Sequence record: NC_042013.1 | Length of the DNA stretch: 64,000 bases | Direction: 5' to 3' (one strand) | Shown here: piece after piece, positions 17,548 through 19,739 of the stretch | Layout: each line of letters starts with the position of its first letter | Position numbering within the stretch: the first letter of the stretch is position 1 | Program-made: the position numbers and the translations under genes | The notes under the pieces: model-generated | Database searches by the model: none | The model's input: only the letters and a program-made list of their open reading frames with translations | Told to the model about the DNA's origin: nothing

Positions 17548-19356
17548 TTAAAATGAAATTGCGGCAGGGCCTTCAAATTCAAAATCTTCATCTTCTTCAT
17601 CTAAAAATTCGGTTGACACGCCTTCTTTTAATTGTTCAGCTAAGTCCTCGTCTTGACTTGCAATTATGTCAGCCATCCTAACACAAAACAACATTGCCAT
17701 TACTAGATCGTCTGTTTCGCCTAATTTTGCTGCATAAGATTCGCCTTTAGCAACAAATGTCTTAAGTTCTTTGATAAGAGCGCGGCTGTTTATCTTCATA
17801 CGATTACTTTCAATGTATGACTTAACTCTAAGGCAAGCTGCGATTTTTGTCTTTCTGTTGGTTGATAAACCTTTTCTTTTACGTTTCGTACCGGGCTTTT
17901 TTGGCTCATGTACAAATGTACCGGGAAAGTTTTCTTCGCCAGTATCATTGATAATAACCAATGCAGCCTCGCCATATGCGTTATTTTCCACTGTCCAATA
18001 AATTTCAGGTTCAAAATTTTGATTAGGGTCATTTTCTTGAACATATTTGATGTATAAGAGAGTGTTCATTAGTAATTGAATTTGATCTTTAATAGTAGTG
18101 TTGTTATGACGCCATTCAGCAACTTGAATCATCGATGGAAGTTCGAATACTTGAAGGGCGGCATAGTCACCTCCTGTTCCAGTGCTTGGATCAAGAGCTA
18201 CCACATATAACTGGTTAGCCTCAACGTCTTTAAACCATCTGACATCACCTATTTTAAATTCTTCCTCGCGACCTTTCATTGCTGCCAATGTAAGACCGTG
18301 AATCAAAGTTTCCTCGTCTGAAACGAACTCACATTCGTGTTCTTGCCTAAATTTAATTTCGCCAAGCTGACTACGTTGTGCATTAGCCCATTTTTCATCA
18401 CGATCTGGATGATCAGACCAAATAGCTTTAACCGATTTAAAACCGTTTCTACCTACACCATTTTCATTTTCATTACCATGATCATCAAAAGTGTCCAATG
18501 ATCCGAACCAAAGTTTAGCGAACATATCTTCGTCATTCAACGGAGTACTGGTTATGATTGCAGAACCACCGGTTGAAAGGGTAGGAGAAATAGATGTCCA
18601 GAAAGCATTTGCAATTGTACTTCTAACGAATGCGAACTCGTCCACATACAATACCGAAATAGACAAACCACGACCAGAATTTTCTGTGGTCGCACGAGCA
18701 ACAATTTTAGAACCATTGTCAAATTTAATAGTACCTTTGTTGTATTCCGTTGTACCAGCACGAAGCCAATCGTATTCTTCCATATTTTCATATGCAAAAC
18801 GAATACGGTCCATAATTTCCAATGCCTGCGCTAAGTTGTTTGCACAAATAAGAATAGTACAGTCATCTGTAAACATTGCTTTCCACAACAAGTATGCAGC
18901 AGCAACGGTGGTATTATGTGATAGTATTCCATTAGTATAGAATAAATTATTATTTTGATCCTCTGGATTATCTGCACTAACGGATAAGCAATACATATGT
19001 GTACGAACGCCAAGAGAATTCACAGATACTACTTTTTCGGGACCGGCGTCAGTTAAAATAGTATCACCAACTTGCAAATCCTCGAGCCAAGCCTCTGAAA
19101 AATCATCACGAATGACTCGATGCTTATCCGCAGCTAACAATGATTTTGTACTGGTTGTTAATGACCATAAATCATACGGTACAGTTCTAAACGCGTCTGT
19201 TACCGTTCCAAAATCACTCTTAAAATTATGACTGGTAGCATGAGTAAATTTCTTTTCATTGTCCATATCAATTTCGTGTTTTACACGATGGTCTTTATCA
19301 AGAACCCACAACACGGCTTTCAAAAAATTGACAAATGTTTTTTTAAAAATATTCAT
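17548..19356 (-). CDS. gp17: Terminase large subunit C-terminal part, preceded by C-half of a split intein
   Basis: Intein end [10 protein letters not shown] then [10 protein letters not shown]; Walker B LYVDEFAF; ITSTP; nuclease [16 protein letters not shown]; GGTGA SD before ATG 19356. Confidence 0.92.
18913..19356 (-). mobile_element. Split intein C-fragment (about 148 aa)
   Basis: Block B LAADKHRV, block F MYCLSV, block G GILSHN/T. Confidence 0.88.
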
Positions 19357-19367
19357 TTTATTCACCA

Positions 19368-19739
19368 TCAACGAACCAATTTCAAAATCAAATCTTCTAT
19401 CATTTCAACTATTTTTTCTCTCAAAGATAATTTAATTAAAGATTTAATTTTAACTTGTTTGTCGTTATATGTTATATCTGTTGATTTATGGACCGATTTA
19501 CCAAGCTGACGACCACACATCGCAATCACTCTTGTATTATTAGTGAAGCCATTAACCATTTCTTTCTGATAATCATACATTACGAATGGTAGACGACCTT
19601 TGATCGCGTGCTGTACTTGAACGTAATTTTCAATAAAATAGATAGGGTCAGATGCACATCTAAGTATTTCGGCCTCGCGTTCTTGGTTATACGTGTCTAA
19701 CGCGTTTGCTTTTTTTGTAAAATTTGGTGTAGAAGACAT
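19368..19739 (-). CDS. gp17: Terminase large subunit N-terminal part plus N-half of split intein
   Basis: [24 protein letters not shown] followed by [20 protein letters not shown]. Confidence 0.92.
19371..19496 (-). mobile_element. Split intein N-fragment (42 aa, Ser1)
   Basis: Starts exactly after the Walker A Lys; joining exteins restores RQLGK-TT. Confidence 0.85.

Follow-up and report, generated by a model that had tools for sequence, protein, structure and literature searches.

The DNA analyzed here is a stretch of 64,000 nucleotides (nt) from sequence record NC_042013.1, referred to below as the window, and the system in question is a large terminase subunit (TerL) encoded on its minus strand in two adjoining genes, called here the N gene and the C gene. 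Over bases 17548-19739 the sequence matches that of Agrobacterium phage Atu_ph07, a jumbo myovirus with a 490-kb genome (MF403008), at 100% identity, and GenBank records two adjoining coding sequences there, each named terminase large subunit. Atu_ph07 is a viable, plaque-forming isolate, and its genome paper mentions neither an intein nor a split terminase (PMC6102473). A preliminary description of the locus had proposed that the two genes are joined by an atypically split intein inside the Walker A motif (P-loop), over 18910-19739, a span that runs exactly from the Thr+1 codon to the start of the N gene. Comparison with relatives, profile searches, and structural models make it likely that a naturally and atypically split intein occupies Walker A of the sole Atu_ph07 TerL gene and joins the two-gene terminase by class 1 chemistry. 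The whole arrangement is on the minus strand and comprises the following features.

19739-19368, minus strand: N gene, 123 amino acids (aa), made up of 81 TerL residues and the 42-aa intein N piece.
19497..19739, minus strand: N-extein, TerL residues 1-81, ending in CGRQLGK, the first half of Walker A; the K81 codon is 19499-19497.
19371..19496, minus strand: intein N piece, 42 aa, with Ser1 (TCG, 19496-19494), a beta-hairpin, a short helix, and a conserved C-terminal helix.
19356..19370, minus strand: gene junction, with the N-gene stop TGA (19370-19368), GGTGA (19366-19362), and the C-gene ATG (19356-19354).
ATG 19356 to 17548, minus strand: C gene, the intein C piece plus the rest of TerL.
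18913..19356, minus strand: intein C piece, 148 aa, with an N-terminal helix (residues 2-19), a beta core, and blocks B, F, and G.
19122-19120, minus strand: His79 of block B (AADKH), in the intein C piece.
18990-18988, minus strand: Cys123, position F4 of block F (HMYC), in the intein C piece.
18915-18913, minus strand: Asn148 of block G (GILSHN), at the end of the intein C piece.
18912-18910, minus strand: Thr+1, followed by T-V-A-A-A-Y.
17548..18912, minus strand: C-extein, 454 aa plus stop, with the second half of Walker A, the remaining ATPase domain, and the nuclease domain.

The gene-level claims of the preliminary description agree with the sequence. The N gene ends in RQLGK followed by 42 intein residues, and the C gene carries about 148 residues with blocks B, F, and G, ending in HN and followed by TT. 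The two frames differ, the C gene lying in the -1 frame relative to the N gene with an upstream open stretch of only 12 codons, and the N-gene stop shares bases with an ATG (TGATG overlap). The GGTGA Shine-Dalgarno sequence is 5 nt upstream of ATG 19356, with 11 nt between the N-gene stop and that ATG, which is the GenBank start of the C gene and aligns with the starts in relatives L005, L006, and L007. Inspection of the 36 nt in which a shift could bring the frames together revealed no slippery heptamer of the form X_XXY_YYZ. A Pfam scan found Terminase_6N and Terminase_6C in the C-extein and gave no match for the N-gene product. Cys123 is the sole cysteine among the 190 intein residues. The C-gene protein matches a single place in the Atu_ph07 genome, so there is no spare unsplit TerL paralogue in this phage.

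The site of insertion is defined by the intein-less TerL of Sinorhizobium phage Phosso, a protein of 532 aa that reads RQMGK|TT across the insertion point (here and below, a vertical bar marks an insertion point or an intein border). The N gene is 49% identical to residues 12-85 of Phosso TerL, with the alignment stopping at RQMGK/K81, and the C gene from T149 is 59% identical over 454 residues to Phosso residues 85-532, beginning exactly at TT. Alignment up to RQMGK and again from TT means that the 190 residues have been inserted exactly between Lys and Thr in Walker A. The insertion is in frame, interrupts a conserved host protein, is absent from the orthologue, and leaves exteins that join seamlessly, as is characteristic of inteins; the predicted spliced TerL would have 535 aa compared with the 532 of Phosso TerL. 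The K|T position of Walker A is moreover a "classic" P-loop intein site (PMC5050341).

That the inserted residues belong to an intein is indicated by both sequence and fold. A family profile built from 13 C pieces and compared with solved structures matched the VidaL intein (6vgv, E=6e-5), followed by the Spl DnaX and gp41-1 inteins, with no other noteworthy match besides solved inteins; a single-sequence PDB search with the C piece returned nothing useful. In the profile alignment, Cys123 lies opposite the F4 Asp of VidaL and Spl DnaX, and His79 lies opposite the block B His. This alignment backs the register of the catalytic positions, all of which are in place: Ser82 of the N gene (intein position 1), His79, His147-Asn148, and Thr149 (+1). 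An AlphaFold2 model of the C piece alone (predicted local distance difference test score, pLDDT, 72.8) places the N-terminal helix ahead of a beta core, and in the model this single piece adopts the HINT fold. In a Foldseek search of the PDB with this model, the top 49 matches were all intein or HINT structures, with VidaL first (E=1.7e-4; root-mean-square deviation 1.3 A over 77 columns). In the N-gene model (pLDDT 81.7), the intein part consists of a hairpin (strands 88-91 and 94-97), a short helix, and a long C-terminal helix (106-122, pLDDT about 87), and in the C-piece model residues 2-19 are helical (pLDDT about 82). The split is atypical: the 42-aa N piece holds block A and the hairpin but not block B, and blocks B, F, and G are all in the C piece.

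Large numbers of relatives share this arrangement. Short N-piece proteins of ~120-130 aa ending in the same way fall into about 55 clusters, and C genes that open with a helix fall into 41 clusters, mostly on contigs of 100-576 kb. Single-protein scans of viral contigs returned few loci, and alignment-based scans of metagenome and viral contigs contributed six more each. The exact insertion relative to an intein-less orthologue, together with the same layout in dozens of independent contigs, puts the arrangement far beyond chance. In L010 (98% identical), the genes overlap as in Atu_ph07, and in L007 the N gene ends in TAA and is followed by a 13-nt spacer and the C gene's own ATG. In L005 the halves are separated by a 339-aa Vsr-like open reading frame (ORF) on the opposite strand (L005:4399-5418, minus), with a terminator hairpin and a TATAAT preceding the C gene. 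Homologous ORFs of 344-352 aa, 40-46% identical to one another, separate the halves in L006, L019, L022, and L029, and the intervening ORFs of this class share a G-[DN]-Y-W-H motif and weak PF18741 matches. The halves of L028 are separated by two unrelated ORFs, and those of L026 are on opposite strands and divergently transcribed (N-piece gene 5545-5925, minus; C-piece gene 6001-7794, plus). In all, the halves are kept as separate genes, the "fractured gene" state, in L010, L007, L005, L006, L013, L022, L026, L028, and L029.

These relatives bear directly on the possibility that the locus holds a contiguous cis mini-intein whose frame was broken by a sequencing or assembly indel or is restored by a programmed frameshift. 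A change of 1 nt in a stretch of about 36 nt (19372-19407) would be enough to join the frames, and A/T homopolymers are close by. The halves are nonetheless encoded separately in four close relatives, each assembled independently, and in many distant ones; the C gene comes with a start and a Shine-Dalgarno sequence of its own, and no slippery heptamer is present. None of the 41 C-piece clusters is contiguous, in a search whose length window would have permitted such a form. The frameshift or sequencing-error explanation is contradicted by these comparative data, was rejected, and is exceedingly unlikely. Spacers, intervening genes, and opposite strands in relatives argue that the split is genuine and no sequencing artefact, and at the level of sequence the comparison settles that the gene pair is truly split. 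The preliminary description's central claim, a two-gene TerL joined by an atypically split intein inside Walker A, is supported by the Phosso empty site, by matches to inteins only, and above all by the relatives with halves separated or on opposite strands.

Selection has maintained both parts of the element. Among Atu_ph07, L010, L005, and L007, the ratio of nonsynonymous to synonymous substitution rates (dN/dS) is, at dS above 1, about 0.05 for the intein C piece and about 0.2 for the intein N piece, compared with 0.02-0.08 for the N-extein and 0-0.01 for the C-extein, and both intein pieces are under purifying selection. In the C pieces, SHN, His79, and several further columns are invariant, and the +1 residue is Thr (Ser in two clusters). 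In 14 N pieces, V111 and E115 of the terminal helix and I98 are invariant, and L121 is nearly so.

From what is known of Walker A motifs, a contiguous P-loop should be required for ATPase activity, and the following route to one is proposed. The two genes would be translated separately, the C gene probably from its own GGTGA and/or by coupling at the TGATG overlap. Association of the N piece (42 aa) with the C piece (148 aa) would then complete the HINT fold, probably aided by the terminal helix of the N piece and the initial helix of the C piece. These helices are located at the break point of other atypical split inteins, between the first beta-hairpin and helix on one side and block B on the other. 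Ser1 would undergo an N-O acyl shift, the ester would be passed to Thr+1, Asn148 would cyclize with the assistance of His147, and an O-N shift would yield ...GRQLGK-TTVAAAY..., a 535-aa TerL with an intact P-loop. Since the spliced product carries the intact P-loop, DNA packaging is predicted to depend on splicing, as the preliminary description had also expected. The same description had placed facing amphipathic helices at the split. The helices themselves are predicted by AlphaFold2, their amphipathicity is only moderate, and their pairing is a conjecture from the models. The two helices add about 35 residues at the point where the AceL-TerL and GOS-TerL inteins are cut, and they are conserved in the family.

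Several points weigh against this reading. Splicing itself is predicted from sequence comparison and models. The structural models cover each piece separately, and the assembled active site and the contact between the helices are putative; block G is poorly confident in the C-piece model. Both helices at the split are only moderately amphipathic, with hydrophobic moments of 0.51 for the N-piece helix (reached by 8.5% of shuffles) and 0.44 for the C-piece helix (4%). The Pfam Intein_splicing model (PF14890) matched the C gene below threshold, at 14.0 bits against a cut-off of 35.8 (E=0.043), although this model expects a contiguous intein and the Atu_ph07 family is divergent. With respect to chemistry, Ser1 together with Cys123 at F4 fits the operational criterion for class 3 inteins, namely no Cys1 and a Cys at C2:4 (Hoffmann et al. 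2020; PMC7891396), changes of Cys1 to Ser usually inactivate class 1 inteins (PMC10189870), and relative L015 pairs the very rare Thr1 with an F4 Cys. These three chemical points make the class 1 assignment a deduction from patterns across the family.

The subthreshold Pfam score would also suit a degenerate, non-splicing intein that serves solely as a dimerization module and holds the two halves together without a covalent bond, and phages do have split enzymes that work without ligation, such as intein-less fractured genes (PMC2677866). This is nonetheless very unlikely. The catalytic positions (the nucleophile at position 1, His79, His147-Asn148, and Thr or Ser at +1) are all kept across a deep family, the low dN/dS extends over the entire C piece, and a 190-aa insert between the Lys and Thr of the P-loop is expected to disrupt ATP binding, on general grounds and from mapping of the TerL pentamer (PMC5050341).

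Natural variation in the family bears on which nucleophile would act first. At position 1, helix-type N pieces have Cys in about 45 clusters, Ser in about 10 (from several lineages), and Thr in one, and no non-nucleophilic residue occurs among the about 55 clusters; at F4, Cys is found in about 26 of the 41 C-piece clusters and Asp in about 15. Among inteins, a Thr at position 1 is very rare. In the pairs that could be reconstructed, the residues are combined as follows.

Ser at position 1, Cys at F4: the Atu_ph07 clade.
Ser at position 1, Asp at F4: L028.
Thr at position 1, Cys at F4: L015.
Cys at position 1, Cys at F4: L012, L013, and L022.
Cys at position 1, Asp at F4: L006, L025, L026, and L029.

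Ser1 with Thr+1 is common to Atu_ph07, L010, L005, L007, and L028. A further Ser/Cys pair may be formed by proteins P0069 (Ser1) and P0017 (F4 Cys), which come from a common contig of 576,358 bp. The Thr1 locus, L015:604-987 and 1129-1611, reads GRQMGK|TVTSK.. and has an F4 Cys and Thr+1.

Most likely, to judge from these sequences, the element would follow canonical class 1 trans-splicing with oxygen nucleophiles. Class 1 is favored because position 1 is always a nucleophile, the F4 Cys is replaceable, the penultimate His is kept, and position N3:12 is Val. In the class-3-like alternative, Cys123 would attack the N-terminal scissile bond, form an internal branched thioester, and pass the acyl group to Thr+1, and Ser1 would not be the first nucleophile or would be a back-up only. 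The operational criterion and the usual loss of class 1 activity upon C1S change keep this route in consideration, as an improbable one (PMC7891396; PMC10189870). In its favor, Cys123 is the only cysteine in the intein, class 3 inteins typically have Thr at +1, and the residue at C1:5, Ser146, is similar to the Thr found there in the WCT triplet (Trp N3:12, Cys C2:4, Thr C1:5). Across the family position 1 drifts between Cys, Ser, and Thr, and L015 combines Thr1 with an F4 Cys; a cis intein at the same K|T site in the E. coli phage UE-S1 has Ala1, an F4 Cys, and THN, and one split class 3 intein with a deviant triplet, AceL NrdHF, is already known. Atu_ph07 itself, however, lacks the full triplet, with Val81, Cys123, and Ser146 in place of Trp, Cys, and Thr, and position 1, which is non-nucleophilic in class 3, is Ser. 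Asp at F4 in about 15 of the 41 clusters, Ser1 paired with Asp in L028, and Cys1 paired with both residues tell against the route as well. Somewhat speculatively, the Atu_ph07 clade could be a natural mechanistic intermediate of classes 1 and 3, in whose Ser1/F4-Cys members the Cys takes or shares the first attack and a family-specific split helical hairpin gives the fragments their affinity. We regard this as improbable; if true, class 3 chemistry would be present in a second split intein, and the family would form a living series on the origin of class 3.

Two patterns proposed for the Ser1 members did not hold across the family. An F4 Cys that co-varies with loss of Cys1, a pattern that would have favored class 3, was rejected on the combinations listed above: Cys1 with F4 Cys, Ser1 with Asp, and Cys1 with Asp all occur. 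His3 (S-V-H-K) as an adaptation specific to Ser1 was rejected as well, as C-L-H-K occurs with Cys1 (L026/P0055) and other Ser1 members have no His3. The NX motif, [KR]-His about 40 residues ahead of the block B His, has been described as specific to Ser1 inteins (PMC10189870). In the corresponding region of Atu_ph07, an invariant His39 lies 40 residues before His79 and is preceded by Thr, and it is invariant in Cys1 members too; Lys26-His27 of the C piece is variable across the family. The preliminary description had presented Ser1/Thr+1 with the only Cys at F4 as a distinct variant. The residues are as it stated, but they do not form a coherent special set, Ser1 and Cys1 each pairing with either F4 residue.

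The closest precedents by host gene are the GOS-TerL, AceL-TerL, and Cat-TerL (PDB 6dsl) inteins. Like the Atu_ph07 intein, they reside in phage large terminases in a "fractured gene" context and are split after the first hairpin and helix, before block B. GOS-TerL is Ser1/Cys+1 with pieces of 37+115 aa and AceL-TerL is Cys1/Cys+1 with 25+104 aa (Dassa 2009, PMC2677866; review, PMC11766414), so that, as the preliminary description correctly stated, both use Cys+1. Their pieces are shorter (N 25-37 aa versus 42; C 104-115 versus 148), they lack the about 35 extra residues of the two helices, and they occupy another insertion site, QE.E|C[ED]F, in contrast with the K|T site and Ser1/Thr+1 of Atu_ph07. 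The profile of the P-loop C pieces matched CatC at E=1.1 only. Some relatives have both inteins. A second short intein N piece, at ..QE.E|C.., closes the C gene in L029 and in about 15 of the 41 clusters, and in L029 the following gene opens with an intein C piece that ends in SHN|C and matches the Cat-TerL consensus 6dsl_B (E=2.9e-6). At L029:6001-8201, and also in e.g. P0019 and P0023-P0027, three genes thus encode TerL and carry two atypically split inteins that differ from each other, the second being Cys1/Cys+1 at ..QE.E|C[ED]F... The match of the second L029 C piece to CatC indicates that the published AceL-TerL and GOS-TerL inteins belong to this second site, which is uninterrupted in Atu_ph07, and that by sequence the P-loop family is distinct from the AceL/GOS/Cat-TerL family.

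Other known inteins resemble the element in single respects. VidaL (PDB 6vgv), the best match in sequence and fold, is also atypically split and comes from phage-like metagenomic DNA, but identity is about 23% and limited to blocks B to G, its host genes differ, and it has Asp at F4. The cysteine-independent split inteins Neq Pol, Aes123 PolB1, and PolB16 OarG (PMC10189870) share Ser1 with Thr/Ser+1 and mesophilic phage-type sources with Atu_ph07, and this shared pair leads one to expect an oxyester route. The atypical split, too, is shared by PolB16 OarG, whose N piece has 15 aa; these inteins are hosted by DNA polymerase B and not TerL, whereas the Atu_ph07 intein keeps one Cys (F4) and has no clear NX motif. 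Class 3 inteins (PMC7891396; PMC2807308) share the F4 Cys, the lack of Cys1, Thr/Ser+1, and phage association, and differ in that here the nucleophile is Ser1, N3:12 is Val and not Trp, C1:5 is Ser and not Thr, and F4 Cys and Asp are interchangeable. AceL NrdHF, the only reported split class 3 intein, is divided at the canonical endonuclease site into 98 + 48 aa. At the same K|T site of Walker A, the TerL1-a intein of mycobacteriophage (PMC5050341) and the UE-S1 TerL intein are contiguous, and the latter contains an internal LAGLIDADG endonuclease, has Ala1, and is weakly similar to the Atu_ph07 intein in blocks F and G only. A literature search found no paper linking a split intein to the P-loop of a jumbo-phage terminase, and the Atu_ph07 intein apparently belongs to a large family in giant phages that is undescribed in the literature searched.

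Naturally split inteins are the main tools of traceless protein ligation. Those that do without a junction Cys (Ser1 with Thr+1), or whose N piece is short, are described as very rare and are the object of active searches (PMC10189870). The Atu_ph07 intein unites both traits, its source is a mesophilic phage in culture for which a laboratory host exists, and its single Cys, replaced by Asp in natural relatives, would be removable. The family also offers a natural series in which Cys, Ser, or Thr at position 1 is crossed with Cys or Asp at F4, bearing on how an active site accommodates a change of nucleophile. For phage biology, the predicted splicing would mean that the P-loop of an essential packaging ATPase is assembled post-translationally in many jumbo phages, in some relatives in a context that includes two different split inteins. 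The intein region also appears to be exchanged between close relatives.

The evidence for such exchange comes from the comparison of Atu_ph07 (window 18750-19950) with L005:4001-7279, where the flanks are 95-100% identical and the intein 79-83%, the drop being graded into the exteins on both sides; in the intein itself, L005 is nearer to L007 than to Atu_ph07. This pattern looks like a homing-type swap of the intein allele together with the endonuclease gene, with the flanks co-converted. "Fractured genes" with a Vsr-like homing endonuclease were described by Dassa et al. in 2009, with the terminase intein as the sole exception in break point (PMC2677866). The Atu_ph07 element would be a member of this mobile family in which relatives carry the Vsr-like endonuclease gene and Atu_ph07 does not: no homologue lies between its halves or elsewhere in the 64-kb window.

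Further inteins in TerL were encountered in the same searches. Escherichia phage UE-S1 (Asteriusvirus) encodes an 885-aa TerL (L003:1319-3973) with Ala1, an F4 Cys, and THN|TT, the class 3 signature, and short E. coli "hypothetical proteins" such as P0134 look like N-terminal fragments of UE-S1-type TerL. On a 572-kb metagenomic contig (L006:5801-6616), the C gene ends after 271 aa in a short intein N piece within Walker B (..GLSISLLY|CLAGDTNVTV..). Walker B would then be the third site in TerL to hold a split intein; no downstream piece to match it was located within the locus. In P0009, P0091-P0094, P0098, and P0101, one of them from a Prevotella metagenome-assembled genome, the same P-loop site is occupied by short intein N pieces of a second family, with the pattern C-L-x-I-N-T-x-I-K-L-K-S-P-x-G...I-G-D-F-Y-E-W-Q-x-F. 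P0034, a protein of 1038 aa from a 440-kb contig, begins with the split-intein C piece of the Atu_ph07 family and has, at a later point in TerL, a contiguous LAGLIDADG intein as well (..SPTLA|CVVGDT..).

Upstream of the N gene, one further feature lies close to its start.

19742..19774, minus strand: hairpin with a perfect 13-bp stem and a subsequent T-run; 3 nt separate its end from the N-gene ATG.

This hairpin is unique in the window, with 0 expected by chance, and is identical in L010, L005, and L007, even though nearby identity in L007 is about 80-89%. Its 3' arm holds the sole AGG near the N-gene start. The hairpin is probably a terminator of the upstream gene and/or a translational control element of the N gene, and not part of the intein. 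Further upstream, AAATACTACT followed by TATAAT is found at window 19783-19803 (minus strand), with no other occurrence in the window, and again at L005:5430-5460, upstream of the separated C gene; it may be a promoter common to both halves that ensures their joint expression.

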